Below are positions 16,750-63,665 of a DNA stretch of 64,000 nucleotides, one piece after another. The stretch comes from Dendrobates tinctorius (lineage: Eukaryota). The stretch's first letter is position 1. Each line of letters starts with the position of its first letter. Below the pieces are notes generated by a model. The model did not search any database. It was not told the origin of the DNA and saw only the letters and a program-made list of their open reading frames with translations. The stretch spans positions 36,146,001 through 36,210,000 of the forward strand of contig NW_027361788.1 of NCBI RefSeq assembly GCF_039654945.1, given 5' to 3'. A program made the position numbers and the translations under genes.

Positions 16750-17692
16750 GGCTAAGTTCACACGTAGCGGAGTCCTGCAGAAGTTACCGCGAGAATTCCG
16801 GAATTCCATTCCGCGGGAAAATCGTATTTTAAATTCTCCCGAGATTTTCCCGTGGAAAAACTAGCAATTTGCAAGTGTAATTAGCTTGCAGAATGCTAGC
16901 GTTTTCCAAGCGATCTAGAGCATCGCTTGGAGAACTGATTGACAGGTTGGTCACACTCGTCAAACATAGTGTTTGACGAGTGTGACCAACTTTTTACTAT
17001 TGAGGCCGCCTATGCAGCATCAGTAGTAAAAAGATCTAATGTTAAAAATACTAAAAAAAATTAAAAATGGTGTTATATTCACCTTCCGACGTCCTAAGCA
17101 GTGTTCCCAGGCCTCCGCGATGCTCTAGCAGCTCCCGTTCCCAGTGATGCATTGCGGCAATGACCTTTGATGACGTCGTGGTCTTGCGAGACCGCTACAG
17201 CATCACGAGACAGCGACGTCAGCAAAGGTCATTATCGCAATGCATTACTGGGAACGGGAGCTGCCGCGTGTATCGCTGAAGCCTGGGGACGCTGCGCGGG
17301 ACGTCGGAAGGTGAATATAACACCTTTTTTTTTATTATTCTATTTTTTACAGGGATATGGTACCCACAGCCCACAGGACAGTCTCCTCTCCTCCAGACCG
17401 TGGGTACCAACCGCAAATGTTCTGCTTACTTTTCGCATGATGGGCACAGCCACATGCGGAAAGTAAGCACAACAATGCATTCCTATGTGGGCGGAATTGC
17501 CGCGATTCCGCAAACTAATGAGCATGCTGCGGATTTTTCCGCGATGCAATTCCGCGGCGGGAAAATCCGCAGCATTGCCGAATCCCATAGGATTGCATGG
17601 GATGCTGGGTTTTTTTTTGTGTTTTCGTGGCAAAATCGCACGTTAAAAACTGCTGCGAAAACTCGAAAAAACCGCGACGTGTGAACGCAGTC
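16750..17692. mobile_element. Harbinger-type MITE with multiple internal hairpins
   Basis: TTA|GGCTAAGTTCACACGT...ACGTGTGAACGCAGTC|TTA. Confidence 0.78.
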
Positions 17693-18615
17693 TTAATGCT
17701 GCAGAGCCCTCCTGTGTGCTCCTGACAAGCCGGCTGACTGATGAATGTTAAAAACAACCTAGGCTTCCAGATCAGCTCTGCTACACTGTGTTCATCTGCT
17801 TCCACCACAGATATTTGGCACATCATCACTATTCATCTGTGCACCTTAACACTAGTCACTCTGCCCGACCCATTTTATCTTCTTCCAGCCACATCAACAT
17901 AACATCTAAATCTGATCTGTTAGCTAGTTTCCAGCACAATTCAACAGTTATGCACGCAACTCTGCGTGCACAGCAGGGCTGATACCTGCAGGGCTGGGCT
18001 GTGTTTAATGTCTGCTGTTGACAGACCACTGATGCAAAATTGCAAATGCCCCACTGATGATGTTATATGGCAGAAGATAATCCTTTGCCATGTGCATCAA
18101 CTGGGCGGTATTTGTAGTTTCACTTCTTTGATCTATGGATATCAGACAGCTCATTGCTTCCTGTGTCAGCTGTGAGTGGAGTGCAGAACTGTTGAGTTGT
18201 GGTGGAAACCAGCCAACAAATGAATGATGGAAAAGTACACAGGCAGCTTTGTTGATGTACAATTTTTAAATGGAAGAAGATAAAATTAGGCTGACACACT
18301 ACTGTACAGGACCATGTCAGCACTGGAGGCAGAGCAGATCTTTACTGGAAGCCAACTGGTACTGTACTGAGAAGGAGCACTGGAACTGCAAAATGAAGGA
18401 CCCAGCGGCAACTGCAGATTAAATAGAGCCCAAAGGTTCGTCTTTGGATGGGCCGTGTGTGCATACCAGGGCAGATTTAAAAAACTGAATATATTGGCAC
18501 AAATGAATTATTATAAACATTATTGTAAGAACAAGTTAAGATTTGGCGACTAACCCTTTAATGGTTTATAAAGTATGCACTTTGTCTTTACAGACTCATT
18601 AATGACAGAGCAGTA

Positions 18616-18831
18616 ATGGCAAAGGCTGCAGTAGCGAAAGACATAAAAGCCCCTCCAACCGTGAAGGAGACGAAAAACCTTAACCAGACCAAAAAAAGGA
18701 AGAAAAAGAAGGAATTCTGGAAAAATCATCCCAAGATCGCAGCAAAGGAAGAGAAGATTAAGAAAGTGACGCCCGTGCTACCTCCCAGGACCCCGCAGGA
18801 GTTTTCTTCTAACTGGAAAATGTTACAGACT
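18616..18831 (+). CDS. REXO4: REXO4 coding exon 1 (exon starts at 18594 after tttacag)
   Basis: gtaATGg start; ACT|gtaagt donor. Confidence 0.9.
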
Positions 18832-21800
18832 GTAAGTGTATATGCAGAGAATCTCGCTATATATTGTATACTAACCTTTCCTGTATAGGAGGTTATAATG
18901 TCGAGATGTAATCATGTGAATGTTGTGCTTTTAGTTGCTGAAACCAGAGAGCAGTAGCCCTGCACCCACATTGACTAAACCCCCCAAAAAACAGGACAAG
19001 GGCTTGAAAAAGGAAACAAAAGCGAATGGGAAGGAAAAACTGGAGCCCACAGCTGATACTGTTCCCCCTAAAATCAACGGCCATCTGAAAGAGACCCTGA
19101 TGTCTCCTAAAAATACATCAATAAAGGAGCCGGCTACCAACCACAAGAGGAAAGAGTCCACAAAGAAGAGAAAATTACCCGAGGAACGTGATAAACGCCA
19201 GCATAAAAGAAAGCACAGTGAGGAAAACACAGCAGAGCCGCCAAAGTAAGCCTTGTGTATATTATATGGGGGGGTACAGGTGCATCTCACAAAACTAGAA
19301 TATCATCAAAAAATTTATTTATTTCAGTTCTTCAATACAAAAAGTGAAACTCATATATTATATAGAGTCATTACAGAGTGATATATTTCACGTGTTTATT
19401 TCTGTTAATATTGATGATTATGGCTTACAGCCAATGAAAACACAAAAGTCATTATCTCAGGAAATTAGAATACTTTATAACACCAGCTTGAAAAAATGAT
19501 TTTAAAATCCAAAATGTTGGCCTACTGAATTGTATGTTCAGTAATTGCACTCAATACTTGGTCGGGGCTCTTTTTGTATCAATTTCTGCATCAAGGCATG
19601 GAGGCAATCTGCCTGTGGCAATGCTGAGGTGTTATGGAAGCCCAGGTTGCTTTGAATAGCAGCCTTCAGCTGGTCTGCATTATTAGATCTGGTGTCTCTT
19701 ATCTTCTCCTTGACAATACCCCATCACGGTCCCAGAGTTTGTAGGAACAGTGAAGAAGCACGCAATCCAAGCTGCTTGAGGTCTAGTGTGAAGTATCCAC
19801 AATCAGTGATGGTTTGGGGAGCCATGTCATCTGCTGGTGTAAGTCAAGTGAGTGTTATCAAGACCAAAGTCAGCACAGCCGTCTACCAGGAAATTTTAAA
19901 GCACTTCATGCTTTCCTCTGCTGACAAGCATTTGGAGATGGAAATTTCATTCTCCAGGAGGACCTGGCACCTGTCCACACTGCCAAAAGTACCAATACCT
20001 GGTTTACAAACAACAGTATCACTGTGCTTGATTGGCCAGCAAACTCGCCTGACCTTAACCCCATAGAGAATCTATGGTGTATTGTCAAGAGGAAGATGAG
20101 AGACACCAGACCCAAGAATGCAGATGAGGATGAAGGCTGCTATCAAAACAACCTGGGCCTCCATAAAACCTCAGCAGTGCCACAGGCTGATCCCCCTCCT
20201 TGCCATGCCACATTGATGCAGTAATTGATGCAAAAGGAGCCCCGACCAAGTACTGAGTGCAGTTACTGAACATACATTTCAGTAGGTAAACATTTTGGAT
20301 TTTAAAATCATTTTTCAAGCTGGTGTTATAAAGTATTTACTGAGATAATGACTTTTGGGTTTTCATTGGCTGTAAGCCATAATAATCAATATTAGCAGAA
20401 ATAAACACTTGAAATAGATTGCTCTGTATGCAATGACTCTATATAATATATGAGCTTCACTTTTTGTATTGAAGAACTGAAATAAATTAACTTTTTGATG
20501 ATATTTTAATTTTGTGAGATGCACCCGTATGTATCACATATTAAGTATTTGATTCAGTATCCGATCCTGGAGAATCTGGGTGACAGCCAATATGGCCACC
20601 TTTACCACTCCCTGTGTAGTGTTAAAGCCAACCAGCCCCTACCAATAACTAAGCTCAACGAAAGCACATGGGATGCCTTATTGGTAATAATAATAAATTT
20701 TATTTCTATAGCGCCGACATATTCCGCAGCACTTTACATTTCAGAGGGGACTTGTACAGACAATAGACATTACAGCATAACAATAATCACATAGATCATA
20801 ACAGATACCAAGAGGAAAGAGGGCCCTGCTCGCAAGCTTACAGTCTATGAGGAAAGAGGTAGACACGAAAGGTGGGTGGTAACAGTTGCCCTGATTGTAT
20901 GGACCAGCCATAATGTTAAGTGTGTAACAGTACAGATACAGAAGGCTAATGGATGCATAAAGCATGTGGGAACATGATGCGGGGAACCTGGTTATGGTAA
21001 AACTTTTGACTGTGCCACACAGGGATAGATTAGGTTAATGTGTTGAGGCGATAGGCCAGTCTGAATAAATGAGTTTTCAGGGCACGCTTAAAATTGTAGG
21101 GATTGGGGACTAATCATATTGACCTGGGAAGTGTATTCCAGAGAATTGGCGCAGCACGTGTATAGTCTTGAAGACGGGAGTGGGAGGTTCTGATTATCGA
21201 GGATGCTATCCTCAGGTCATCAGCAGAATGGAGGGCGCGGGTAGGATGGTATACTGAAACAAGGGAGGAGATGTAGGGTGGTGCTGAGCCATGGAGGGCT
21301 TTGTGGGTGAGGGTAATAAGTTTATACTGAATTCTGGAGTGGATGGGTAGCCAGTGTAATGACTGGCACAAGGTAGAGGCATCGGTGTACCGATTGGTGA
21401 GGAATATGATCCTGGCTGCAGCATTCAAGACAGATTGGAGGGGGGAGAGTTTGGTAAGAGGGAGACCGATTAGAAGGGAGTTACAATAGTCGAGACGAGA
21501 ATGAATAAGAGAAACAGTAAGAGTTTTTGCAGAGTCAAAAGTAAGAAAAGGTCAAATTCTAGAAATGTTTTTGAGGTGCAGATAACAAGAGCGAGCCAGT
21601 GATAGGATATGGGGGGTGCATGAAAGCTCGGAGTCAAGTATGACCCCAAGTCAGCGGGCATGTTGCAGGGGAGTAATAGTGGAACAACACACGAAAATGG
21701 CAATGTCGGTTATATGTACATTAGTAGCGGGAGGAAACACAAGGAGTTCGTTTTTTGACATGTTCAGTTTCAGATATAGTGAGGACATGATGTTAGACAC

Positions 21801-24800
21801 AGCGTTTAGACAATTGCCGGTGTTTTCTAGAAAGGCTGGCGTGATGTCAGGAGAAGAAGCGTATAATTGGGTGTCATCGGCATAGAGATGGTACTGGAAA
21901 CCAAATCTACTGATTGTTTGACCAATAGGGGCAGTGTACAAGGAGAAGAGGAGGGGGCCTAGAACCGATCCTTGGGGGACCCCAACAGTAAGGGGAAGAT
22001 GAGAGGAGGAGGAGCCGGCAAAAGATACAGTAAAGGAGCGGTCAGAGCGATAGGAGGAGAACCAGGAGAAAATGGTGTCCTTGAGGCCAATGGCGCGGAG
22101 CATAGTGAGGAGGCGCTGATGATCCACAGTGTCGAATGCTGCAGAGAGATCCAAGAGAATTAGCATGGAGTAATGACCATTTGATTTAGCTGTTGGTAGT
22201 CACCCAGCTTTCTCAGATTCAGATTTAATGACTGAATTGAGACATTTAACCATTAGTGGACATTATCTACATTATTTATTGTTTATATTTCTTTTCAGAA
22301 TAGACCTCTGGTTTGATGACGTGGATCCGGATGATATTGAGGCTGCGCTAGGTCCAGAAGCGGGTAACATGGCACGGCAGATGCAAGGATTGCCAGAGAA
22401 AACATCAGATGCTGTGGACAAGGTTCTAGTGAAGGACAGGGCGTTTGAGGGGTAAGTGAACCCACAATTACACACGTTTACTGTGCATTACACCCCACAC
22501 AGCTGCCGGCTGACAGCCCCAATGATCACCTATCCATACACGGGCATGCTATGTTAGGTGAAACGTGCAGAAAGTTCCAGTCGCCTCTGGCGGCAGCTCA
22601 TCTTTCCTGAGAGGAAAAGATTAGGTGTTAATGCAGCAGGCTGATACTTCTCTCCCCAACATTATCTTTCGGGAGTCCATCATGCACATAAGTGGTCAGT
22701 CTAGACGGCCCACCTTAGGCCTCATGGAGACGGCAGTGATTCAAGTACGTGTTCTTCAGACAGAACATTTATCCATTATAGTCTATGGGACTATTCACAT
22801 GTCACGGTCGGTTTATGAAAATGACGGCCTCACACAGATACCATCCATGTGCTATTTGACTGATTTTTAACATTGTAATGGATAGCAGATGCTTTGCAAG
22901 ATTTTTATGGGTGTGTGAGAAAATCACTGGTGGTAACCAGATCGGTGGAGTCGGTAAGCCAAACCTCCAACTCCTCAATTTCCCTGACTCCGACCCCACA
23001 GCACTGATCACTACTGAGCATGTGCATGAAGTGCAGCACAGATTCATCTCATCTACAACCCCACAGCACTGGTCACTACTGAGCATGTACATAAAGGGCA
23101 GCACAGATTCATCTCATCTATGACCCCACAGCACTGGTCACTACTGAGCATGTACATAAAGGGCAGCACAGATTCATCTCATCTATGACCTCACAGCACT
23201 GGTCACTACTGAGCATGTACATAAAGGGCAGCACAGATTCATCTCATCTACGACTCCACAGCACTGGTCACTACTGACATGTACATAAAGGGCAGCACAG
23301 ATTCATCTCATCTACAACCCCACAGCACTGGTCACTACTGAGCATGTACATAAAGGGCAGCACAGATTCATCTCATCTATGACCCCACAGCACTGGTCAC
23401 TACTGAGCATGTACATAAAGGGCAGCACAGATTCATCTCATCTATGACCTCACAGCACTGGTCACTACTGAGCATGTACATAAAGGGCAGCACAGATTCA
23501 TCTCATCTACGACTCCACAGCACTGGTCACTACTGACATGTACATAAAGGGCAGCACAGATTCATCTCATCTACAACCCCACAGCACTGGTCACTACTGA
23601 GCATGTACATAAAGGGCAGCACAGATTCATCTCATCTATGACCCCACAGCACTGGTCACTACTGAGCATGTACATAAAGGGCAACACAGATTCATCTCAT
23701 CTATGACCTCACAGCACTGGTCACTACTGACATGTACATAAAGGGCAGCACAGATTCATCTCATCTACAACTCCACAGCACTGGTCACTACTGAGCATGT
23801 ACATAAAGGGCAGCACAGATTCATCTCATCTACAACCCCACAGCACTGGTCACTACTGAGCATGTACATAAAGGGCAGCACAGATTCATCTCATCTACAA
23901 CCCCACAGCACTGGTCACTACTGACATGTACATAAAGGGCAGCACAGATTCATCTCATCTATGACCTCACAGCACTGGTCACTACTGAGCATGTACATAA
24001 AGGGCAGCACAGATTCATCTCATCTATGACCCCACAGCACTGGTCACTACTGAGCATGTACATAAAGGGCAGCACAGATTCATCTCATCTACATCTCCAC
24101 AGCACTGGTCACTACTGAGCATGTACATAAAGGGCAGCACAGATTCATCTCATCTATAACCCCACAGCACTGGTCACTACTGACATGTACATAAAGTGCA
24201 GCACAGATTCATCTCATCTACGACCCCACAGCACTGGTCACTACTGACATGTACATAAAGGGCAGCACAGATTCATCTCATCTACAACCCCACAGCACTG
24301 GTCACTACTGACATGTACATAAAGGGCAGCACAGATTCATCTCATCTATGACCTCACAGCACTGGTCACTACTGAGCATGTACATAAAGGGCAGCACAGA
24401 TTCATCTCATCTATGACCTCACAGCACTGGTCACTACTGACATGTACATAAAGGGCAGCACAGATTCATCTCATCTACGACCCCACAGCACTGGTCACTA
24501 CTGAGCATGTACATAAAGGGCAGCACAGATTCATCTCATCTATGACCTCACAGCACTGGTCACTACTGAGCATGTACATAAAGGGCAGCACAGATTCATC
24601 TCATCTATGACCTCACAGCACTGGTCACTACTGACATGTACATAAAGCGCAGCACAGATTCATCTCATCTACAACCCCACAGCACTGGTCACTACTGAGC
24701 ATGTACATAAAGGGCAGCACAGATTCATCTCATCTATGACCTCACAGCACTGGTCACTACTGAGCATGTACATAAAGGGCAGCACAGATTCATCTCATCT

Positions 24801-27800
24801 ACGACCCCACAGCACTGGTCACTACTGAGCATGTACATAAAGGGCAGCACAGATTCATCTCATCTACGACCCCACAGCACTGGTCACTACTGACATGTAC
24901 ATAAAGGGCAGCACAGATTCATCTCATCTATGACCCCACAGCACTGGTCACTACTGAGCATGTACATAAAGGGCAGCACAGATTCATCTCATCTACGACC
25001 TCACAGCACTGGTCACTACTGAGCATGTACATAAAGGGCAGCACAGATTCATCTCATCTGTGACCCCACAGCACTGGTCACTACTGAGCATGTACATAAA
25101 GGGCAGCACAGATTCATCTCATCTACGACCTCACAGCACTGGTCACTACTGACATGTACATAAAGGGCAGCACAGATTCATCTCATCTACAACCCCACAG
25201 CACTGGTCACTACTGAGCATGTACATAAAGGGCAGCACAGATTCATCTCATCTATGACCCCACAGCACTGGTCACTACTGAGCATGTACATAAAGGGCAG
25301 CACAGATTCATCTCATCTACAACCTCACAGCACTGGTCACTACTGAGCATGTACATAAAGGGCAGCACAGATTCATCTCATCTATGACCCCACAGCACTG
25401 GTCACTACTAAGCATGTACATAAAGGGCAACACAGATTCATCTCATCTATGACCTCACAGCACTGGTCACTACTGACATGTACATAAAGGGCAGCACAGA
25501 TTCATCTCATCTGCAACCCCACAGCACTGGTCACTACTGAGCATGTACATAAAGGGCAGCACAGATTCATCTCATCTATGACCCCACAGCACTGGTCACT
25601 ACTGAGCATGTACATAAAGGGCAGCACAGATTCATCTCATCTACATCTCCACAGCACTGGTCATTACTGAGCATGTACATAAAGGGCAGCACAGATTCAT
25701 CTCATCTACATCTCAACAGCACTGGTCACTACTGAGCATGTACATAAAGTGCAGCACAGATTCATCTCCTCTATGACCTCACAGCACTGGTCACTACTGA
25801 GCATGTACATAAAGGGCAGCACAGATTCATCTCATCTACGACCCCACAGCACTGGTCACTACTGAGCATGTACATAAAGGGCAGCACAGATTCATCTCAT
25901 CTACATCTCCACAGCACTGGTCACTACTGAGCATGTACATAAAGGGCAGCACAGATTCATCTCATCTACGACCCCACAGCACTGGTCACTACTGAGCATG
26001 TACATAAAGGGCAGCACAGATTCATCTCATCTACAACCCCACAGCACTGGTCACTACTGAGCATGTACATAAAGTACAGCACAGATTCATCTCATCTATG
26101 ACTCCACAGCACTGGTCACTACTGAGCATGTACATAAAGGGCAGCACAGATTCATCTCATCTACATCTCCACAGCACTGGTCATTACTGAGCATGTACAT
26201 AAAGGGCAGCACAGATTCATCTCATCTACATCTCCACAGCACTGGTCACTACTGAGCATGTACATAAAGGGCAGCACAGATTCATCTCATCTATGACCCC
26301 ACAGCACTGGTCACTACTGAGCATGTACATAAAGGGCAGCACAGATTCATCTCATCTACGACCTCACAGCACTGGTCACTACTGAGCATGTACATAAAGG
26401 GCAGCACAGATTCATCTCATCTACAACCCCACAGCACTGGTCACTACTGAGCATGTACATAAAGTACAGCACAGATTCATCTCATCTATGACCCCACAGC
26501 ACTGGTCACTACTGACATGTACATAAAGGGCAGCACAGATTCATCTCATCTATGACCCCACAGCACTGGTCACTACTGAGCATGTACATAAAGGGCAGCA
26601 CAGATTCATCTCATCTATGACCCCACAGCACTGGTCACTACTGAGCATGTACATAAAGGGCAGCACAGATTCATCTCATCTACATCCCCACAGCACTGGT
26701 CACTACTGAGCATGTACATAAAGTGCAGCACAGATTCATCTCATCTATGACCTCACAGCACTGGTCACTACTGAGCATGTACATAAAGGGCAGCACAGAT
26801 TCATCTCATCTACAACTCCACAGCACTGGTCACTACTGAGCATGTACATAAAGGGCAGCACAGATTCATCTCATCTACGACCCCACAGCACTGGTCACTA
26901 CTGAGCATGTACATAAAGTGCAGCACAGATTCATCTCATCTATGACCCCACAGCACTGGTCACTACTGAGCATGTACATAAAGGGCAGCACAGATTCATC
27001 TCATCTATGACCCCACAGCACTGGTCACTACTGAGCATGTACATAAAGGGCAGCACAGATTCATCTCATCTATGACCCCACAGCACTGGTCACTACTGAG
27101 CATGTACATAAAGGGAAGCACAGATTCATCTCATCTACGACCTCACAGCACTGGTCACTACTGACATGTACATAAAGGGCAGCACAGATTCATCTCATCT
27201 ACAACCCCACAGCACTGGTCACTACTGAGCATGTACATAAAGGGCAGCACAGATTCATCTCATCTGTGACCTCACAGCACTGGTCACTACTGACCATGTA
27301 CATAAAGGGCAGCACAGATTCATCTCATCTACATCCCCACAGCACTGGTCACTACTGAGCATGTACATAAAGGGCAGCACAGATTCATCTCATCTACGAC
27401 CCCACAGCACTGGTCACTACTGAGCATGTACATAAAGGGCAGCACAGATTCATCTCATCTACGACCCCACAGCACTGATCACTACTGAGCATGTACATAA
27501 AGGGCAGCACAGATTCATCTCATCTACATCTCCACAGCACTGGTCACTACTGAGCATGTACATAAAGGGCAGCACAGATTCATCTCATCTACATCTCCAC
27601 AGCACTGGTCACTACTGAGCATGTACATAAAGGGCAGCACAGATTCATCTCATCTACATCTCAACAGCACTGGTCACTACTGAGCATGTACATAAAGTGC
27701 AGCACAGATTCATCTCATCTACGACCCCACAGCACTGGTCACTACTGAGCATGTACATAAAGGGCAGCACAGATTCATCTCGTCTACATCCCCACAGCAC

Positions 27801-30800
27801 TGATCACTACTGACATGTACATAAAGGGCAGCACAGATTCATCTCATCTACAACCCCACAGCACTTGTCACTACTGAGCATGTACATAAAGGGCAGCACA
27901 GATTAATCTCATCTATGACCTCACAGCACTGGTCACTACTGACATGTACATAAAGGGCAGCACAGATTCATCTCATGTACGACCCCACAGCACTGGTCAC
28001 TACTGAGCATGTACATAAAGGGCAGCACAGATTAATCTCCTCTATGACCTCACATCACTGGTCACTACTAAGCATGTACATAAAGGGCAGCACAGATTCA
28101 TCTCATCTACAACTCCACAGCACTGGTCACTACTGAGCATGTACATAAAGGGCAGCACAGATTCATCTCATCTACATCCCCACAGCACTGGTCACTACTG
28201 ACATGTACATAAAGGGCAGCACAGATTCATCTCATCTATGACCCCACAGCACTGGTCACTACTGAGCATGTACATAAAGGGCAGCACAGATTCATCTCAT
28301 CTACATCCCCACAGCACTGGTCACTACTGAGCATGTACATAAAGTGCAGCACAGATTCATCTCATCTATGACCTCACAGCACTGGTCACTACTAGGCATG
28401 TACATAAAGGGCAGCACAGATTCATCTCATCTACGACCCCACAGCACTGGTCACTACTGAGCATGTACATAAAGGGCAGCACAGATTCATCTCATCTATG
28501 ACCCCACAGCACTGGTCACTACTGAGCATGTACATAAAGGGCAGCACAGATTCATCTCATCTACGACCTCACAGCACTGGTCACTACTGACATGTACATA
28601 AAGGGCAGCACAGATTCATCTCATCTACAACCCCACAGCACTGGTCACTACTGAGCATGTACATAAAGGGCAGCACAGATTCATCTCATCTACATCCCCA
28701 CAGCACTGGTCACTACTGACATGTACATAAAGGGCAGCACAGATTCATCTCATCTACAACCCCACAGCACTGGTCACTACTGAGCATGTACATAAAGGGC
28801 AGCACAGATTCATCTCATCTGTGACCTCACAGCACTGGTCACTACTGACCATGTACATAAAGGGCAGCACAGATTCATCTCATCTGTGACCTCACAGCAC
28901 TGGTCACTACTGACCATGTACATAAAGGGCAGCACAGATTCATCTCATCTACATCCCCACAGCACTGGTCACTACTGAGCATGTACATAAAGGGCAGCAC
29001 AGATTCATCTCATCTACGACCTCACAGCACTGGTCACTACTGACATGTACATAAAGGGCAGCACAGATTCATCTCATCTACAACTCCACAGCACTGGTCA
29101 CTACTGAGCATGTACATAAAGGGCAGCACAGATTCATCTCATCTATGACCCCACAGCACTGGTCACTACTGAGCATGTACATAAAGGGCAGCACAGATTC
29201 ATCTCATCTACGACCCCACAGCACTGGTCACTACTGAGCATGTACATAAAGGGCAGCACAGATTCATCTCCTCTATGACCTCACAGCACTGGTCACTACT
29301 GAGCATGTACATAAAGGGCAGCACAGATTCATCTCATCTGTGACCCCACAGCACTGGTCACTACTGACCATGTACATAAAGGGCAGCACAGATTAATCTC
29401 ATCTGTGACCTCACAGCACTGGTCACTACTGACCATGTACAGTACATAAAGGGCAGCACAGATTCATCTCATCTACATCCCCACAGCACTGGTTACTACT
29501 GACATGTACATTAAGGGCAGCACAGATTCATCTCATCTATGACCCCACAGCACTGGTCACTACTGAGCATGTACATAAAGGGCAGCACAGATTCATCTCA
29601 TCTACAACCCCACAGCACTGGTCACTACTGAGCATGTACATAAAGGGCAGCACAGATTCATCTCATCTACAACCCCACAGCACTGGTCACTACTGAGCAT
29701 GTACATAAAGTGCAGCACAGATTCATCTCGTCTACGACTCCACAGCACTGATCACTAGTGAGCATGTACATAAAGGGCAGCACAGATTCATCTCATCTAC
29801 ATCTCCACAGCACTGGTCACTACTGACATGTACATAAAGGGCAGCACAGATTCATCTACATCTCCACAGCACTGGTCACTACTGACATGTACATAAAGGG
29901 CAGCACAGATTCATCTCATCTACAACCCCACAGCACTGGTCACTACTGAGCATGTACATAAAGGGCAGCACAGATTCATCTCATCTACATTTCCACAGCA
30001 TTGGTCACTACTGAGCATGTACATAAAGGGCAGCACAGATTCATCTCATCTACAACCCCACAGCACTGGTCACTACTGAGCATGTACATATAGTGCAGCA
30101 CAGATTCATCTCGTCTATGACTCCACAGCACTGATCACTAGTGAGCATGTACATAAAGGGCAGCACAGATTCATCTCGTCTACGACTCCACAGCCCTGAT
30201 CACTAGTGAGCATGTGCATGAAGTGCAGCACAGATTCATCTCAACTAAAACTCTAGATCCTTAGATCAGGAATAGAGCAGACATTCATAGGAGACATTTT
30301 ATAACTTTCCCAAATTATCATGATAACCTTTACGTCATATCCTGAACTGAACTACCGGACCCAATTTATTAGATATTTTAGGAGTTGGATTCTGTCCATT
30401 TTATTCCGACTCCACAGCCCTGGTACAAACAGACACCAATCAAACACAGATGGAAATTGGTCTTTTTATTTTTTCTCACATGTAAAAAAAAAAATAAAAT
30501 ACAAAGTGAGGCCTTACTGTAATGTGTGTGTGGAGCAGGCTTGTGTCTTGCCAAAGACATGGATGGGATAATGAGGTAAAGGTATCCTGACTACAGATGT
30601 GGCATATATGTCTCATAGGTATCAGCCTCATCTTTCCAATCTTCACCTATTGGGAAACCTGTGGTCCTTCGTCCACTTTTTAGCTGTTGCGCAGCAAAGA
30701 CGGAAGCGAGGAGAGCTGTCATAACCTGATCCCAGGACTGTTTCAATGATTCGCATAGACTACAATAGAATGAGCTCCAACTCTCTTTTTACACTTCTTT

Positions 30801-33800
30801 ATGCGGTCGCAAGACAAGGGATCATAGGTCTCCAAATAAGTGTTGGGGATCCCACCTTATGCCATTAATTTAATCACCCTTTAATAGAAAAGGTGAAACG
30901 CACTGAATATAACCTGGACTGAGCCTGTGCCGATTAGTGCACCATGCTCTTACTTTTGCATGACGTGGATTTCCTGCTGTTTCTATACGTGGTTACCATT
31001 TCTTACTGTATGCTATATTTCCATCCATCCTGTAAGACGGGGCGGTCCATACCGACAGCTCTCATTACTACTCTCATATGTGACATTGTTCTCTCCTTTT
31101 CTGTTTCAGACTCACAAGAACTGTCGCCATGGACTGTGAGATGGTGGGAGTGGGCACAGATGGTGAAGAAAGCATCCTGGCGCGGGTATCCATTGTCAAC
31201 CAGTTTGGGAAATGCATCTACGATAAGTTTGTTAAACCCACAGAACGCGTCACAGACTACAGGACGGCAGTGAGCGGAATCAGGCCGAAGGATGTAAAGA
31301 ATGGTAAGGACACCAGGGGCCATGTCGTCTTTTTTTTTTTTTTTGACATATCCTGATAAATATCTATATATCTATCTGTGTTTTTATAGGGGAAGATTTC
31401 AAGGTTGTACAAAAAGAAGTATCCGAGATCCTTAAGGGACGTATCCTGGTTGGTCATGCTGTACATAATGATCTAAAGGTCAGTAATGATTGGCACATCT
31501 TGAGGGCTTTCTCTGGAATACAACTCTTGTCCCTGTGCCCAGTTGGCATATATTCATGTCATAATGAGGAGGGGGATTACCTGTTTTCACCAGAGCGGAG
31601 AGACGTGATGGTAAGAGTGGTCTCCGCTTTGGTAGATCCTCATCTATCAGTCAGAGTGAGAGCGGTTACAAAGGACTACTCTCGCTCCGGATCCAACCTG
31701 AACCAGCAGTGCACTGGCAGTCTATTGATGTGAATGGGCACTTCGCAGTTTTTCATTTCTCCTGTGGTGGCGCTGCAGGGAAATTAAACACTTATTGCCT
31801 GGTTTCCTCACAGATTGCGGGAGATCCAAGCAGGAGGCGGGGTCTTTGTAATCTGCTTTCTTTTACCATGTAAAGACTGTGTGAAGCAGAGAACCCCCTT
31901 AAGTATAATTGGTGTCATTCATCATTATTTATTTTCAGTGCTGGGCTGATTTTCTTACTTTGCAGCCGTAGTGTATGGATTTGCGGTTTAAAGTTTTGTT
32001 TTACTTTTTCAGATTTTCTTTCTGGATCATCCTAAAAAAGCCACAAGAGACACTCAGAAGTACAAACCGTTCAAACAAAAAGTGAAGGTAAGCTGCCATC
32101 ATATGGAAGTCCGAGCAAGTCAGAAAGTCACACATAAGTGTCACGTGGGTCTAAAACTGCACTTGGGGTGCAGTCCTATATCCATAGAGATAACCAGTGC
32201 CAAGACCCCACACCCAGTGTTAGAATAAAGGTGATTGTAAAGCTGAAGTGGTCTCATGTCTCGTCACTTGGGAGCCTCTCAACTTCTGTCAAATCTGTGT
32301 ATTCACTAAATTGTGGTTGGGCCTCATCCTAAAAACAGGGTTATGACCTACATTTATTGGTAATATGCCATAACAAACTGAGATGGGAATATCCCTTTAA
32401 GCAGAAAAATAATGGTGCAATGGGACTGTAGCATGGATTTCATGACTACCTATGATGAATTGCTGTAAAAAAAAAGCCGCACCGCTGTACTGTAATTTTT
32501 AGCGCATTCATTTAAAAAATCTGAATGTATAAGTTTATTTTTTTAATGTACTCACCCTTCTGTCCCATGTCGTCTCCTTCCAGTCCTCGCGTCCATCCTT
32601 GAAGCTGCTGTGTGAGAAAATCCTAAATGTTAAAGTACAGAGTGGAGAACATTGCTCAGTAAGTAACTAGTTCGACATCCGTTTTCCCTGGTTTAGAGAT
32701 CCTGCTCTGGAGGACACTGTCACCATGTAATGCTATCAGTGCTATCATCTTGGCTTTGTGCAGTGGATGATTTTGCAAACTCCCCTCTCCCGCTCTTTGA
32801 CCACAATCTTCTTTCATTCTCTATCAAGAACTGCCAGGCTGCTCAGGTCACCCCCACTGTCCAGACTTATAGAAACATACAGGCCATTAACACCCAGAAA
32901 CTTATGAAGAACTTGCAGTCTTCATTGGCCCCTATCTCCTCCCTCTCATGTCCTGATTCTGCATTGAAGCATTACAATAAAACACTTCAAAGTGCCCTGG
33001 ATGAATTTGCACCCCCTATAAATAGAACACCACAACGCAGACGGCGACAACCCTGGCACACGGTGCAAACACGTTTCCTGCAGCGATGCTCCAGGTGCGC
33101 CGAACGTCTGTGGAGAAAATCCAATCTACACGAAGATTTCATCCATTTTAAGTTTATGCTTAGAACATACAACACTGCCCTTCACCTCTCCAAACAAACC
33201 TATTTCAACACCCTCATCACCTCACTGTCCAATAACCCGAAACGTCTCTGACACTTTTCATTCTCTACTCAATCCAAGAGTACAGGCCCCAACCACGGAG
33301 CTCCGAGCTGACGATCTGGCCAATTACTTCAAAGAAAAAATTGATTGACCAGATTCGACAGGAAGTTATCTCCCAATCACCATATACCATGCACTGTCCT
33401 TCCTCCCCCACTGCATCTAGCTCACTCTCTGATTTTGAACCAGTCACAGAAGAAGTAGTAAGCAGGCTCCTTGCATCTTCTCGCCCAACCACTTGCACCA
33501 GTGACCCATTTTTGTCACATCTCCTCCAGTCCCTTTCCCCTGCTGTCACCCCTCACCTAACTAAAATATTTAACCTCTCTCTCTCTTCAGGTATTTTTCC
33601 CTCCTCATTTAAGCATGCCATCATACATCCACTACTTAAAAAACCATCCCTCGACCAAAACTGTGCCGCTAACTATAGACCTGTCGCTAATCTTCCCTTC
33701 ATCTCTAAACTCCTGGAACGCCTGGTCCACTCCCGTCTTATCCGCTATCTCTCAGAAAACTCTGTTCTAGACCCTCTCCAATCCGGTTTCCGCTCTTTAC

Positions 33801-35819
33801 ACTCCACTGAAACTGCCCTCACTAAAGTCTCTAATGATCTGCTAACAGCTAAATCAAATGGTCATTACTCCATGCTAGTTCTCTTGGATCTCTCTGCAGC
33901 ATTCGACACGGTGGATCATCAGCTCCTCCTCACTATGCTCCGTTCCATTGTCCTCAAGGATACCGTTCTCTCCTGGTTCTCCTCCTATCTCTCCGACCGC
34001 TCCTTTACTGTATCTTTTGCCGGTTCCTCCTCCTCTCACCTTCCCCTTACTGTTGGGGTCCCCCAAGGATCGGTTCTAGGCCCCCTCCTCTTCTCCTTGT
34101 ACACTGCCCCTATTGGTCAAACAATCAGTAGATTTGGTTTCCAGTACCATCTCTATGCTGATGACACCCAATTATACGCTTCTTCTCCTGACATCACGCC
34201 AGCCTTTCTAGAAAACACCGGCGATTGTCTAAACGCTGTGTCTAATATCATGTCCTCACTATATCTGAAACTGAACCTGTCAAAGACTGAACTCCTGGTG
34301 TTTCCTCCCTCTACTAATGTACCTATACCCGACATTGCCATTTCTGTGTGTGGCTCCACTATTACTCCCCAGCAACAGGCCCGCTGTCTTGGGGTCATAC
34401 TTGATTCTGAGCTTTCCTTTGCCCCCCACATTCGATCACTGGCTCGCTATTGTCATCTGCACCTCAAAAACATTTCTAGAATTCGACCTTTTCTTACTTT
34501 TGACTCTGCAAAAACTCTTACTGTTTCTCTTATTCATTCTCGTCTGGACTATTGTAACTCTCTTCTAATCGGTCTCCCTCTTACCAAACTCTCCCCTCTC
34601 CAATCTGTCTTGAATGCTGCAGCCAGGATCATATTCGTCACCAATCGGTACACCGATGCCTCTACCTTGTGCCAGTCATTACACTGGCTACCCATCCACT
34701 CCAGAATCCAGTATAAACTTATTACCCTCACCCACAAAGCCCTCCATGGCTCACCACCACCCTACATCTCCTCCCTTGTTTCAGTATACCACCCTACCCG
34801 CGCCCTCAGTTCTGCTGATGACCTGAGGTTAGCATCCTCGATAATCAGAACCTCCCACTCCCGTCTACAAGACTTTACACGTGCCGCGCCAATTCTTTGG
34901 AATGCACTTCCCAGGTCAATACGATTAGTCCCCAATCCCCACAATTTTAAGCGTGCCCTGAAAACGCATTTATTCAGACTGGCCTATCGCCTCAACACAT
35001 TAACCTAATCTATCCCTGTGTGGCACAGCCAAAAGTTTTACCATAACCAGATTTCCTGCATCATGTTCCCACATGCTTTATGCATCCATTAGCCCTCTGT
35101 GTCTGTACTGTCACACACTTTATGGCTGGTTCATACAATCAGGGCAACTGTTACCACCCACCTTTCGTGTCTACCTCTTTCCTCATAGATTGTAAGCTTG
35201 CGAGCAGGGCCCTCATTCCTCTTGGTATTTGTTATAATCTACTGTATGTGATTATTGTTATGCTGTAATGTCTATTGTCTGTACAAATCCCCTCTGAAAT
35301 GTAAAGTGCTGCGGAATATGTCGGCGCTCTAAAAATAAAATTTATTATTATCAGTTCTGCTGCACTGGTCTCCATGTTGTGCCCCATTTTATCTGTTCTC
35401 GCTTTGTCCCAGTTATAAGGCCACCCTAAAAGTTTGCTAAATCCAATGTTGGTGGGATCAGGTGATTATTTTGTGTGTGGACTATGGAACATAGTTGTCT
35501 GTTCCGGGACAATATTTAAAAACTTATTCTATTTTCTCCTCTCCAGGTTTTGTTGCCTTTTTATGTAGCTTTCCCCACCTCCGGATATCTAATGTTTTAT
35601 CTGCTCTCTGTGATGATCTGGCAACCTTCCCAGAGGAGGACCTGGAATACGTAAGATTGTTTAACCCTTCTGTGCTCTTCACTATCATAGATCCAGGATG
35701 CACAGGCTGCCATGAGGTTGTACACCATGGAGAAGAAGAACTGGGAAAACGCCATCAAAGCAAAATACAGCCAAACTAAAACAGAACCACGAAAACAGAA
35801 GCTGCCACCGCCACCATGA
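18616..35819 (+). CDS. REXO4: RNA exonuclease 4 (XPMC2-like DEDDh 3'-5' exonuclease), complete, 413 aa; join(18616-18831,18935-19245,22299-22451,31110-31303,31390-31478,32013-32087,32584-32658,35691-35819)
   Basis: Lys-rich N-terminus with [19 protein letters not shown], Exo[11 protein letters not shown], Exo[12 protein letters not shown], Exo[15 protein letters not shown]. 1242 nt in frame, all introns GT-AG. Confidence 0.96.
18935..19245 (+). CDS. REXO4: REXO4 coding exon 2
   Basis: ttttag| LLKPESS...AEPP AA|gtaagc; 311 nt. Confidence 0.9.
19277..20527. mobile_element. Non-autonomous Tc1 derivative with ~450-bp inverted arms
   Basis: TA|CAGGTGCATCTCACAAA...TTTGTGAGATGCACCCG|TA; degraded SVMVWGAM and [15 protein letters not shown] in the centre. 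Confidence 0.92.
20687..22192 (-). mobile_element. 5'-truncated L2/CR1-type LINE (RT C-terminal part, 3'UTR, (TTA)n tail) in REXO4 intron 2
   Basis: [27 protein letters not shown] and LHWLP motifs, with stop/frameshift. TTGGTA is duplicated at 20681-20686 and 22193-22198. Confidence 0.93.
22299..22451 (+). CDS. REXO4: REXO4 coding exon 3
   Basis: cttttcag| [18 protein letters not shown]...RAFEG |gtaagt; 153 nt. Confidence 0.94.
22938..30422. mobile_element. hAT-like MITE shell enclosing the 65-bp satellite
   Basis: Left end CAGATCGGTGGAGTCGG versus right end CCGACTCCACAGCCCTG (14/17 inverted match); flanks GTGGTAAC/GTACAAAC match only 5/8. Confidence 0.6.
22990..30243. repeat. 65/64-bp tandem satellite, ~112 copies, filling REXO4 intron 3
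   Basis: Unit GATTCATCTCATCTA(variable)CACAGCACTGGTCACTACTGA(G)CATGTACATAAAGGGCAGCACA; period 23041, 23106, 23171, 23236, 23300. Confidence 0.98.
31110..31303 (+). CDS. REXO4: REXO4 coding exon 4 (ExoI)
   Basis: gtttcag| [15 protein letters not shown]...DVKN G|gtaagg; 194 nt. Confidence 0.95.
31390..31478 (+). CDS. REXO4: REXO4 coding exon 5 (ExoII)
   Basis: ttatag| [10 protein letters not shown]...GHAVHNDLK |gtcagt; 89 nt. Confidence 0.95.
32013..32087 (+). CDS. REXO4: REXO4 coding exon 6
   Basis: ttttcag| [25 protein letters not shown] |gtaagc; 75 nt. Confidence 0.94.
32584..32658 (+). CDS. REXO4: REXO4 coding exon 7
   Basis: ccttccag| [25 protein letters not shown] |gtaagt; 75 nt. Confidence 0.94.
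32748..35348 (+). mobile_element. 5'-truncated L2/CR1-type LINE in REXO4 intron 7; RT domain open at 33341-35008, frameshifts near 33250 and 33340
   Basis: End of the endonuclease domain (DHNLL), NYRP, QSGFR, YADD, SRLDYCN, (TTA)n tail; TATCA flanks both ends. Confidence 0.95.
35691..35819 (+). CDS. REXO4: REXO4 coding exon 8 (to stop)
   Basis: atcatag| [19 protein letters not shown]...PPPP TGA. Confidence 0.93.
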   Translation: MQDAQAAMRLYTMEKKNWENAIKAKYSQTKTEPRKQKLPPPP

Positions 35820-35990
35820 ACCGCCTCCTGATCGGCACTGGACAGTATAGTATTGTGAGGACTGATGGATAAGCCGTGCCTTGTTCCTTCCCCTATCTAA
35901 ATCTGTACATCGGTTCTTTACACCTCACTGTCTGATCCATGGAGGAGCAAGAAAGACTAAAAAAATTATGGACTGAAAATTTAGGTTCAC

Positions 35991-35999
35991 TTTATTAAA
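35991..35999. terminator. Candidate polyadenylation signal TTTATTAAA (ATTAAA on +, AATAAA on -)
   Basis: First hexamer after the REXO4 stop; alternatives are ATTAAA at 36229 and an AATAAA cluster at 37398-37423. Confidence 0.35.
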
Positions 36000-37451
36000 A
36001 ACTGTTTATAAACCTAAATGACGGGTGAAAAAAGCATCTTCACACACAAAATGGTAAAGGTATTCTTTATTTTTAAAGGGAACATATCATCTAAGACCTC
36101 TTTATGCAGATGGATGAAATGGACTTTCAGTTGTAGAATATGCTACTGTTAATGAGTACCACTGACTTTATTTGCAGGGCGCTCTGCATTTGACAAAGAA
36201 CATGGCAACTTTTGTGATGTATCAAACAATTAAAAATAATTTTACCTATTTTTATTGAGATATTGTTTCTAATAGACTGTTTATAGGAATATTTACTGAT
36301 AGAAAACTCTGACCTTCAGCTGACTATAATGGATGGTTTTATACTAGGGGCTCGTTTATACTGTAGCATATACGCGTGCCAGAAAGATACCGCAACCATC
36401 CATGCAGAACTACCATGTGACGTAATGTATATGTGATATTATGTCTGCAAAATGGTGTTAAACGCATATCTAAACGGCCAATAGCAAATTTCTTCTTTTA
36501 AAGGGATATTCTGAAAGGTCAGGGGGTTCTAAGACAGGGTCTAAAATCTTCTGCACTCCACAACTGTTATGAAATGACAGGTCAATGAATGGTGGGAGTT
36601 GTAGTTTCACAACAGCTGGAGAGCTGCAAAGGAAAAGAGGAAAAGCTATTTTTGTCAGGGATACAATAACAGGATACTCCTGGCTTAAGTGATTGGTTAA
36701 GATATGGAATGGTTTAATAAGTGGTGCTTGATCTAACTCTAGGACCCCACCATTCTTGAGAATGACCACTGCTCCTCTGATGTAGTGCTGCAAGCGCCCA
36801 GCCATATGCTGGGCAGGGGAACTGCAGCACCGCTCCATTTAAAGTGGAGTCGGCTGCAATTCCCTGCACAGCCGAGCGGCCGTGGTGCCCAAAACTGCTA
36901 AGGGGCCACAGGACTAAATCAGCGGTGCATTCCTTTGTCATGGGGATCTAGAAGGTCGGACCTTTCAGATTATACAGTGATGGCTTAAGTTGTGTAACAA
37001 GATTTGCACGACCCTGGTCAAATGGCTGGTACACCGTGGCTGCCAGTCCAGAGCCTCACAAATCCCTTCCTAGCTGCGGCAGCCCCAGCATAATGATGTG
37101 CCAGGCCTAATCAGAAAAGATCCCAGGAATGCTGCAAGAAGATACTTGCAGGGTTCTGAATCGGTGGTCATGGACCAGGGTCGTACATCTTTTTGCTACA
37201 CTCTTGTGATGATCTACCCCCTAGGCACAGCGTTAATGTAATGTCATTGGTTATTTTTCTTCAGCTGTACCATCCTATAGAGAATCTAGAAGCGAGGGTT
37301 GTACATAAAGCCGCGACCCCCCCTTCATTGATGACATCTGTGATGTTCCCAGCTTTGGACACATCAGCTGTATTTTTTTACATCTCTATTTAAAAAAAAT
37401 AAATAAAATAAAAAATGAATAAAGCAACAAATCTGGTTGCAGAAGTCACAT

Positions 37452-56333
<18,882 letters not shown>

Positions 56334-56961: not shown

Positions 56962-59900
56962 TGTGAGTCCTGCATCCCCCTCCCACTAATACAGAGAGCC
57001 TGTGAGTCCTGCATCCCCCTCCCACTAATACAGAGAGCCTGTGAGTCCTGCATCCCCCTCCCACTAATACAGAGAGCCTGTGAGTCCTGCATCCCCCTCC
57101 CACTAATACAGAGAGCCTGTGAGTCCTGCATCCCCCTCCCACTAATGCAGAGAGCCTGAGTTCTACATCCCCCTCCCACTAATGCAGAGATCCTGTATCC
57201 CTCTCCCACTAATGCAGAGAGCCTGAGTCCTGCATCCCCCTCCCACTAATGCAGAGAGCCTGAGTCCTACATCCCCCTCCCATGAATGCAGAGAGCCTGA
57301 GTCCTGCATCCCCTCCCACTAATGCAGAGAGCCTGAGTCCTGCATCCCCTCCCACTAAAGCAGAGAGCCTGAGTCCTGCATCCCCTCCCACTAATGCAGA
57401 GAGCCTGTGAGTCCTGCATCCCCCTCCCACTAATACAGAGAGCCTGAGTCCTGCATCCCCCTCCCACTAATGCAGAGAGCCTGAGCTCTACATCCCCCTC
57501 CAACTAATGCAGAGAGCCTGAGTCCTGCATCCCCCTCCCACTAATGCAGAGAGCCTGTGAGTCCTGCATCCCCCTCCCACTAATACAGAGAGCCTGTGAG
57601 TCTTGCATCCCCCTCCCACTAATGCAGAGAGCCTGAGCTCTGCATCCCCCTCCCACTAATGCAGAGAGCCTGAGTTCTGCATCCCCTCCCACTAATGCAG
57701 AGAGCCTGTGAGTCCTGCATCCCCTCCCACTAATGCAGAGAGCCTGAGTCCTGCATCCCCTCCCACTAATGCAGAGAGCCTGAGTCCTGCATCCCCTCCC
57801 ACTAATGCAGAGAGCCTAAGTCCTGCATCCCCCTCCCACTAATACAGAGAGCCTGAGTCCTGCATCCCCTCCCACTAATGCAGAGAGCCTGAGTCCTGCA
57901 TCCCCTACTCCCAATGCAGAGAGCCTGAGTCCTGCATCCCCTCCCACTAATGCAGACAGCCTGTGAGTCCTGCATCCCCCTCCCACTAATACAGAGAGCC
58001 TGAGTCCTGCATCCCCTCCCACTAATGCAGAGAGCCTGAGTCCTGCATCCCCTCCCACTAATGCAGAGAGCCTGTGAGTCCTGCATCCCCCTCCCACTAA
58101 TACAGAGAGCCTGAGACCTGCATCCCCCTCCCACTAATGCAGAGAGCCTGAGTCCTGCAACCCCTCCCACTAATGCAGCCTGTGAGTCCTGCATCCCCCT
58201 CCCACTAATACAGAGAGCCTGAGTCCTGCATCCCCTCCCACTAATGCAGCCTGTGAGTCCTGCATCCCCCTCCCACTAATACAGAGAGCCTGAGTCCTGC
58301 ATGCCCTCCCACTAATGCAGAGAGCCTGTGAGTCATGCATCCCCCTCCCACTAAAACAGAGAGCCTGAGTCCTGCATCCCCCTCCCACTAATGCAGAGAG
58401 CCTGAGTCCTGCATCCCCCTCCCACTAATGCAGAGAGCCTGAGACCTGCATCCCCATTCACTAATGCAGAGAGCCTGAGTCCTGCATCCCCCTGTCACTA
58501 ATACAGAGTGCTTGTGAGTCCTGCATCCCCCTCCCACTGATGCAGAGAGACTGAGTCATGCATCCCTCTCCCACTGATGCAGAGAGACTGTGAGTCCTCC
58601 ATCCCCCTCCCACTGATGCAGAGACTGAGTCCTGCATCCCCCTCCCACTGATGCAGATCCTGTGACTCCTGCATCCCCCTCCCACTAATGCAGAGAGCCT
58701 GAGTCCTGCATCCCCCTCCCACTGATGCAGATCCTGTGACTCCTGCATCCCCCTCCCACTAAAACAGAGAGCCTGAGTCCTGCATCCCCCTCCCACTAAT
58801 GCAGAGAGCCTGAGTCCTGCATCCCCCTCCCACTAATGCAGAGAGCCTGTGAGTCCTGCATCCCCCTCCCACTAATGCAGAGCTTGAGCTCTGCATCCCC
58901 CTCCCACTAATGCAGAGAGCCTGATCTCTACATCCCCCTCCCACTAATGCAGAGAGCCTGAGTCCTGCATCCCCCTCCCACTAATGCAGAGAGCCTGTGA
59001 GTCCTGCATCCCCCTCCCACTAATACAGAGAGCCTGAGTCTTGCATTCCCCTCCCACTAATGCAGAGAGCCTGAGCTCTGCATCCCCCTCCCACTAATGC
59101 AGAGAGCCTGAGTTCTGCATCCCCTCCCACTAATGCAGAGAGCCTGTGAGTCCTGCATCCCCTCCCACTAATGCAGAGAGCCCGAGTCCTGCATCCCCTC
59201 CCACTAATGCAGAGAGCCTGAGTCCTGCATCCCCTCCCACTAATGCAGAGAACCTGAGTCCTGCATCCCCCTCCCACTAATGCAGAGAGCCTGAGTCCTG
59301 CATCCCCTCCCACTAATGCAGAGAGTCTGAGTTCTGCATCCCCTCCCACTAATGCAGACAGCCTGTGAGTCCTGCATCCCCCTCCCACTAATACAGAGAG
59401 CCTGAGTCCTGCATCCCCTCCCACTAATGCAGAGAGCCTGAGTCCTGCATCCCCTTCCACTAATGCAGAGAGCCTGTGAGTCCTGCATCCCCCTCCCACT
59501 AATACAGAGAGCCTGAGTCCTGCATCCACCTCCCACTAATGCAGAGAGCCTGAGTCCTGCATCCCCTCCCACTAATGCAGCCTGTGAGTCCTGCATCCTC
59601 CTCCCACTAATACAGAGAGCCTGAGTCCTGCATCCCCTCCCACTAATGCAGAGAGCCTGTGAGTCCTGCATCCCCCTCCCACTAATACAGAGAGCCTGAG
59701 TCCTGCATCCCCCTCCCACTAATGCAGAGAGCCTGAGTCCTGCATCCCCCTCCCACTCATAGAGTGCTCGTGAGTCCTGCATCCCCCTCCCACTGATGCA
59801 GAGAGACTGAGTCCTGCATCCCCCTCCCACTGATGCAGAGAGACTGTGAGTCCTCCATCCCCCTCCCAATGATGCAGAGACTGAGTCCTGCATCCCCCTC

Positions 59901-62900: not shown

Positions 62901-63665
62901 TTCCACTAATGTAGAGCCTGATTCCTGCATCCCCCTCCCACTAATGCAGAGAGCCTGAGTCCTGCATCCCCTCCCACTAATGCAGAGAGCCTGAGTCCTG
63001 CATCCCCCATTCACTAATGCAGAAAGCCTGAGTCCTGCATCCCCCTCTCACTAATACAGAGCTTGTGAGTCCTGCATCCCCCTCCCACTGATGCAGAGAC
63101 TGAGTCCTGCATCCCTCTCCCACTGATGCAGATCCTGTGAGTCCTGCATCACCCTCCCACTAATGCAGAGCCTGAGTCCTGCATCCTCCTCCCACTAATG
63201 CAGAGCCTGTGAGTCCTGCATTCTCCTCCTTTAATGCAGAGAGCCTGTGAGTCCTGCATCTCCCTCACACTAATATAGAGAGCCTGTGAGTCCTGCATCC
63301 TCCTCCCACTAATGCAGAGAGCCTTTGAGTCCTGCATCCCACTAATGCAGAGAGCCTGTGAGTCATGCAGTCCCCTCCCACTAATGCAGAGCCTGAGTCC
63401 TGTATCCCCCTCCCACATACAGAGAGCCTGAGTCCTGCATCCTCCTGTCACTGATACAAAGAGCCTGTGAGTCCTGCACCCCCTACCACTAATACATAGA
63501 GTCTGTGAGTCCTGCATCCCCCATCCACTAATGCAGAGAAACTGAGGCCTGTAACCCAAGCCACCTAATACAGTAAGTCTTCGAGCTCTGCACCCCCTGT
63601 CTACTAACATAGGAAGCCTGCAAGTCCTACATCCCCCTCCCACTAATAGGAGAGCCTGAGTCATG
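56962..63665. repeat. 38-41-bp C-rich minisatellite (GAGTCCTGCATCCCCCTCCCACTAATGCAGAGAGCCT), ~150 copies, interrupted by a solo LTR
   Basis: Seen directly; source of all GGGCRTQALC pseudo-ORFs. Confidence 0.97.
61974..62771. mobile_element. Solo LTR (798 bp) inserted in the minisatellite
   Basis: TGTTGTGA...TCATAACA imperfect inverted termini; CTGAGT duplicated on both sides; unique sequence interrupting the array. Confidence 0.8.

Follow-up and report, generated by a model that had tools for sequence, protein, structure and literature searches.

The window analysed here, a 64-kb stretch of the Dendrobates tinctorius genome, contains a REXO4-like gene whose exons 3-7 lie between two L2-type LINE copies in inverted orientation. 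The gene model comprises eight coding exons (Table 1), all of whose splice sites are AG/GT, and joining them gives 413 codons with a single terminal stop. An earlier, sequence-only reading of this DNA had named the splice sites that border exons 3-7 and put these exons at 153+194+89+75+75 = 586 nt; our model returns the same sites and sizes, with every site AG/GT and a frame that reads through. Exon numbers in this text are coding-exon numbers. An acceptor-like tttacag lies at ~18592, 24 nt before the ATG, so that an upstream non-coding exon may exist and the true exon numbers may be one higher. At the other end of the gene, exon 8 is probably the last exon, because an ATTAAA lies at 35994, 175 nt past the stop codon, and no strong donor follows it.

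Exon 4 matches the Pfam family RNase_T (PF00929) with an E-value of 8.4e-09, and the closest solved structures are ISG20 (5.5e-16) and ISG20L2. The name REXO4, as against ISG20L2 or AEN, is a putative assignment that follows the lysine-rich N-terminal exons, the layout of 413 codons in eight exons and the likeness to the human REXO4 sequence. We describe the gene as a likely REXO4-like DEDDh exonuclease, a compact and probably essential host for the insertions described below. An Rfam search returned no known RNA families in 17000-31300 or 31360-38000.

Table 1. Positions of the REXO4-like coding exons, of the L2-type LINE copies with their complementary blocks, and of other repeats within the gene. 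Coordinates are those of the window.
Feature	Position	Strand	Description
Coding exon 1	18616-18831	+	ATG at 18616
Coding exon 2	18935-19245	+	Donor 19245 is the donor for the proposed exon 2-8 skipping
Fold-back DNA-transposon remnant	19275-20529		Intron 2; starts 29 nt past the exon-2 donor
Upstream arm	20687-22199	-	3' part of an L2-type LINE in intron 2, antisense to the gene
Coding exon 3	22299-22451	+	153 nt; acceptor 22299 is the would-be back-splice acceptor
Satellite	22991-30247		7.26 kb; 65-nt unit x 112; most of intron 3
Coding exon 4	31110-31303	+	194 nt; start of the DEDDh exonuclease domain
Coding exon 5	31390-31478	+	89 nt
Coding exon 6	32013-32087	+	75 nt
Coding exon 7	32584-32658	+	75 nt; donor 32658 is the would-be back-splice donor
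Downstream L2-type LINE copy	32733-35351	+	Intron 7, sense to the gene, 5'-truncated
Downstream arm	33839-35351	+	Portion of the sense L2 complementary to 20687-22199
Coding exon 8	35691-35819	+	Carries the stop codon
Gapless block 1	20918-22199/33839-35120		1282 nt, 95% complementary
Gapless block 2	20792-20916/35117-35241		125 nt, 95% complementary
Gapless block 3	20687-20793/35245-35351		107 nt, 97% complementary

Introns 2 and 7, which hold the two LINE copies, are similar in length (3053 and 3032 nt), and intron 3 between them spans 8.7 kb. The antisense copy in intron 2 is 5'-truncated and consists of the C-terminal half of the reverse transcriptase (RT) and the 3' UTR, with an open reading frame that is fragmented into pieces such as 21651-22166 and 21114-21428. 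The sense copy in intron 7 contains a 555-aa open RT frame at 33341-35008 (Pfam RVT_1, E 3.6e-35) and ends at 35351 with an (ATT)n-like tail. In tblastn comparisons its protein homology begins at ~32700-32754, opposite residue 79-112 of its relatives. The copy has thus lost its 5' end and at least some of the endonuclease domain, apparently most or all of it, and it also shows several frame changes. No record matched the 173-aa open reading frame at 32730-33248 in an exact look-up. The APE-type endonuclease that would lie upstream of the RT is absent from both copies, each being 5'-truncated, and a relative that is 74% identical (P0003) carries PF14529 together with RVT_1, so the family has an endonuclease domain that these two copies lack. 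Both are truncated copies, and neither is autonomous.

The best database match to the RT of the sense copy is a Dendrobates tinctorius protein at 97%, followed by one from Ranitomeya imitator at 91%; other frogs are ~60-64% identical, and platypus RTs 54-57%. Because the best match comes from the species itself and the next from Ranitomeya, the element appears to belong to a young family, putatively of L2 and not CR1 type; the top RT matches are frog proteins without an element name. The 'tgtaagct..gcaggg' block of the 3' UTR and the A/T-rich tail resemble those of L2 and MIR tails. The antisense copy is the more decayed of the two, with 91.9% identity to the same D. tinctorius protein versus 96.6% for the sense copy (tblastn). 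Two AATAAA/ATTAAA signals in gene orientation were seen within the sense copy, at 35334 and 32976, the former being the LINE's own tail signal; this insertion might instead act by causing premature polyadenylation within intron 7, with the loss of exon 8.

Within the 64-kb window, the upstream arm is the reverse complement of the downstream arm at ~94-95% identity. A global alignment of the two spans 1518 columns with 1430 matches, 78 mismatches and two 5-nt indels, and blastn recovers the pair as a single alignment (33844-35351 versus 22194-20687) at 94.3% over 1513 columns; three gapless blocks make up the pairing (Table 1). The RT peptides of the copies are 90% (154/171) and 93% (97/104) identical to each other. 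Near-identical inverted L2 elements around exons 3-7 had been proposed by eye, over ~1.5 kb at 90-95% and with RT peptides ~90% identical: the repeat search, blastn and the global alignment all agree on the pair, and the measured values bear out those estimates. Among the 78 mismatches are 49 transitions and 29 transversions, 12 mismatches are of CpG type, and 29 of the 78 become G:U pairs in RNA; this spectrum looks like that of neutral decay. The global alignment also contains 17 perfect runs of at least 30 bp, the longest of them 119 bp, and on this basis the 1.5-kb duplex is predicted to be a suitable ADAR substrate.

An inverted repeat of this kind cannot be a chance match. The inverted layout as such is unremarkable, since two copies have a 50% chance of taking it and the genome is rich in this LINE family. 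Besides these two copies, blastn found just one further piece of the element in the 64-kb window, a tail of 57 nt at 43604-43660. A self-comparison of the 17-38 kb interval found no further inter-intron complement besides the L2 arms; neither arm has another partner there, and a single further pair emerged, the fold-back element inside intron 2.

The homology of both copies stops exactly at the LINE 3' A/T-rich tail, beyond which the flanks are unrelated. Their 5' truncation points differ: the antisense copy starts at a position equivalent to 33839-33844 of the sense copy (22199 being equivalent to 33839), and the sense copy reaches back to ~32733. The shared tail end, the unrelated flanks and the differing truncation points identify the copies as two independent 5'-truncated retrotranspositions. 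Two recent insertions had also been claimed in the sequence-only reading, and the young family (97% match) and the independence of the copies both speak for that claim. A quite different origin would be an assembly artefact or an inverted segmental duplication, and long-read assemblies of repeat-rich genomes can indeed contain false fold-backs. Such an event would have to account for 78 differences and two indels, for different 5' ends, for copies that both end at the LINE tail with unique, unrelated flanks, and for ordered, in-frame exons between them. We rejected the assembly fold-back and the segmental duplication because of the differing 5' ends, the unrelated flanks and the 78 mismatches, and we give an origin of this kind hardly any credence.

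The pair had further been put forward as a substrate for genomic inversion. This is trivially true of any inverted repeat, but the longest identical run is only 119 bp, and efficient homologous recombination generally needs identical stretches longer than this. An inversion between the arms would disrupt the gene.

Two other repeats occupy the introns of the gene. The intron-3 satellite has a 259-nt higher-order period with 94% matches and a strong C-over-G skew. The fold-back element of intron 2 has arms at 19275-19724 and 20074-20529 that are 86.6% complementary, ~450 nt each and ~350 nt apart. Since it pairs within intron 2, it offers the L2 arms no competition; its local hairpin would form with much greater ease than the long-range L2 duplex and would probably be a substrate for dsRNA-binding factors or ADAR in its own right. 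A transposase-like fragment is visible in the open reading frame at 19692-20066. We take the element, by eye only, to be Tc1-like, a reading for which 19692-20066 gave no Pfam match.

Further repeats lie outside the gene. A 312-nt, MITE-like palindrome (17040-17351, 79% self-complementary) is located ~1.3 kb upstream of the REXO4 start, with smaller palindromes at 17418-17575, and an 85-nt tandem array (37944-38572, 7.3 copies, 81% matches) lies ~2 kb downstream of the gene. Towards the right end of the window are 37-nt satellite arrays at 56964-61907 (134 copies) and 62772-63662 (24 copies), G+C-rich and with a strong C skew, as well as related 30/31-nt and 23-nt minisatellites at 52170-53143, 54788-55782, 45242-45614 and 44296-44702 with the motif 'TATGGAGCACTATGTGGGG...ATTATACTG'. 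At the left end, a purine-rich (AG)n-like array of 18-34-nt units (1871-2741) flanks an N gap at 2152-2482, and the long open reading frames around 1871-2741 are low-complexity artefacts.

The position of the L2 arms relative to the splice sites determines what a duplex between them could do. The antisense arm stops 99 nt short of the exon-3 acceptor, far enough away for a branch point to fit between them; the earlier placement of this arm stands, with its distance of ~105 bp corrected to 99 nt. For the sense element, the earlier figure of ~90 bp past the exon-7 donor agrees with the start of the copy at ~32700-32748, which lies 42-90 nt past the donor, but not with the start of complementarity. 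The first ~1.1 kb of the sense copy has no partner; its pairable part begins only 1180 nt past the donor, and a further 339 nt separate the end of that part from exon 8. Between the arms is a loop of 11,639 nt that contains exons 3-7 and the 7.26-kb satellite.

We used RNAduplex to compute the pairing energy of the arms, which comes to -2827 kcal/mol, compared with -593 kcal/mol for a control that pairs the upstream arm with the unpaired part of intron 7; folded alone, the arms reach -391 and -304 kcal/mol. The inter-arm duplex is thus predicted to be overwhelmingly favoured thermodynamically, and the limit on its formation would be kinetic. Once intron 2 has been fully transcribed and can be spliced, ~9 kb must still be transcribed before intron 7 is reached and ~11.6 kb before the partner arm appears. 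As the arms are transcribed that far apart, across the 7.3-kb satellite, intron 2 may be removed co-transcriptionally before pairing. Even where the duplex did form, ADAR editing or helicase unwinding could cancel its effect.

These kinetics raise the possibility that the pair leaves the RNA entirely unaffected, either because intron 2 is gone before the intron-7 arm appears or because helicases or ADAR block pairing. The 11,639 nt between the arms, the early completion of intron 2 and the ability of each arm to fold on itself all favour this view. Against it count the very large energetic gain from the duplex and the many known circRNAs that span at least 10 kb with flanking repeats. Circles have moreover been linked to long flanking introns and repeats (PMC11872487). 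We consider a complete lack of consequence less likely than not, but the second most likely of the readings weighed here.

The features of a circRNA locus with reverse-complementary introns that can be read from DNA are all present: complementary arms in introns 2 and 7, no intra-intron competitors for them, and canonical splice sites, including those of the would-be back-splice (ttcag/AATAG at 22299 and GCTCA/gtaagt at 32658, with the slash at the exon boundary). Any pairing in vivo, any circle and any editing of the arms are predictions from these features. The 586 nt of exons 3-7 are a multiple of 3 plus 1 and not a multiple of 3, so a product that joins exon 2 to exon 8 is frameshifted, as had been predicted. 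Conceptual translation of this predicted join gives 183 residues, the last few out of frame. Because its premature stop falls in the last exon, the exon 2-8 product would probably escape NMD. When translation is continued conceptually over the proposed back-splice junction, the REXO4 frame meets a stop after 5 codons.

These products would gain regulatory weight if the duplex acted as an effective switch that diverts a substantial share of the REXO4 pre-mRNA into the 586-nt circle and the frameshifted exon 2-8 mRNA, thereby tuning the level of the nuclease. Every structural prerequisite for such a switch is in place. Back-splicing usually amounts to a small fraction of linear output, however, which counts against it, as do arms that are far apart in transcription time, a complementary part that lies 1.2 kb from the donor, and the youth of insertions whose arms show neutral-looking decay. 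In other systems, reverse-complementary matches can drive back-splicing and, along with it, exon skipping (PMC8330042), and human REXO4 is a known circRNA host (PMC4872085) from which circREXO4(2,RI,3) has been described (PMC12366282). Against this stands the apparent recurrence of such pairs in the D. tinctorius genome, so that no special claim arises for this one (PMC11152451). We regard the functional switch as a reasonable but generic prediction and, at this locus, as very improbable.

A lineage-specific, poison-frog version of the switch would add regulated pairing, set for example by ADAR or helicase levels, and would yield a stable 586-nt circle together with an NMD-escaping mRNA for a 183-residue, nuclease-less fragment. 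If this were true, the product would be an N-terminal fragment of a ribosome-biogenesis factor without its nuclease. No feature of the sequence favours regulation over two passenger insertions, and we rate this version as more improbable still.

The explanation that we favour, and consider probable as well as the most likely of those weighed here, is that the L2 copies are neutral passengers with at most a low-level by-product circle. Two separate retrotranspositions would have placed young L2-type copies in introns 2 and 7 of the REXO4-like gene, one antisense and one sense to it; their neutrality is our default assumption. Pairing would then be confined to the minority of pre-mRNAs that still contain intron 2 when intron 7 is transcribed, 11.6 kb later. 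In these molecules, pairing of the arms would bring the exon-7 donor (32658) near the exon-3 acceptor (22299), and the expected outcome is a low-level 586-nt circle, perhaps with some exon 2-8 skipping, and ADAR hyper-editing of the arms. The main product would still be the linear REXO4 mRNA.

This explanation fits what has been described in other animals, where repeat-driven circularisation is a generic mechanism (PMC8330042, PMC8516420, PMC11872487). In C. elegans zip-2, deletion of either reverse-complementary match abolishes both back-splicing and skipping (PMC8330042). In mammals, young and species-specific TE dimers predominate in the flanks of circRNAs and accumulate changes as neutral sequence does; circRNAs restricted to one species usually owe their formation to young inverted TEs in the flanking introns, and the pairs show no sign of selection (PMC8516420). 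In the newt Pleurodeles waltl, repeats occur in the flanking introns of 9,129 of 9,799 circRNAs, with an enrichment of inverted pairs (PMC11872487); a look through supplementary files of that study found no mention of REXO4. Repeats make up more than 75% of the D. tinctorius assembly, in which 702,556 LINEs are annotated; 27,152 of them overlap introns, and many insertions are recent (PMC11152451). In so repeat-rich a genome, the inverted-pair arrangement is expected many times over, and what is described here is an ordinary layout, correctly annotated, among many elements of its kind.

If the circle is made, it would be one more case of a young-transposon pair creating a species-specific circRNA, a principle well documented in mammals, nematodes and a newt. 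The locus would serve as a test case, offering a single, very long and well-defined pair in a compact host gene and without competing repeats. It resembles the inverted Alu and reverse-complementary-match systems of mammals and C. elegans zip-2 in having young-TE repeats in the introns that flank an internal exon block and in the outcomes predicted from them (back-splicing, exon skipping and ADAR editing). It differs in that the frog arms are 1.5-kb LINE sequences and not ~300-nt SINEs or 13-40-nt matches, and in that it has one pair where the known systems have many that compete; the circle at the frog locus is a predicted one. As putative L2-type elements, the two copies share the RVT_1 reverse transcriptase with the L2-clade LINEs of frogs and monotremes and have their closest relatives in frog genomes, but both copies in the window are truncated and non-autonomous.

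With human circREXO4, the locus has in common what is apparently the same host gene, already known to be circularised, whereas the human circle uses exons 2-3 with a retained intron. The repeats that flank human REXO4 are expected to be primate-specific and so unrelated to the frog L2 pair. A further parallel is with the TE-associated circRNAs of Pleurodeles waltl, likewise an amphibian with a TE-expanded genome; its enriched pairs are formed by hAT, LTR and nMITE elements, whereas the pair at the frog locus is formed by L2.
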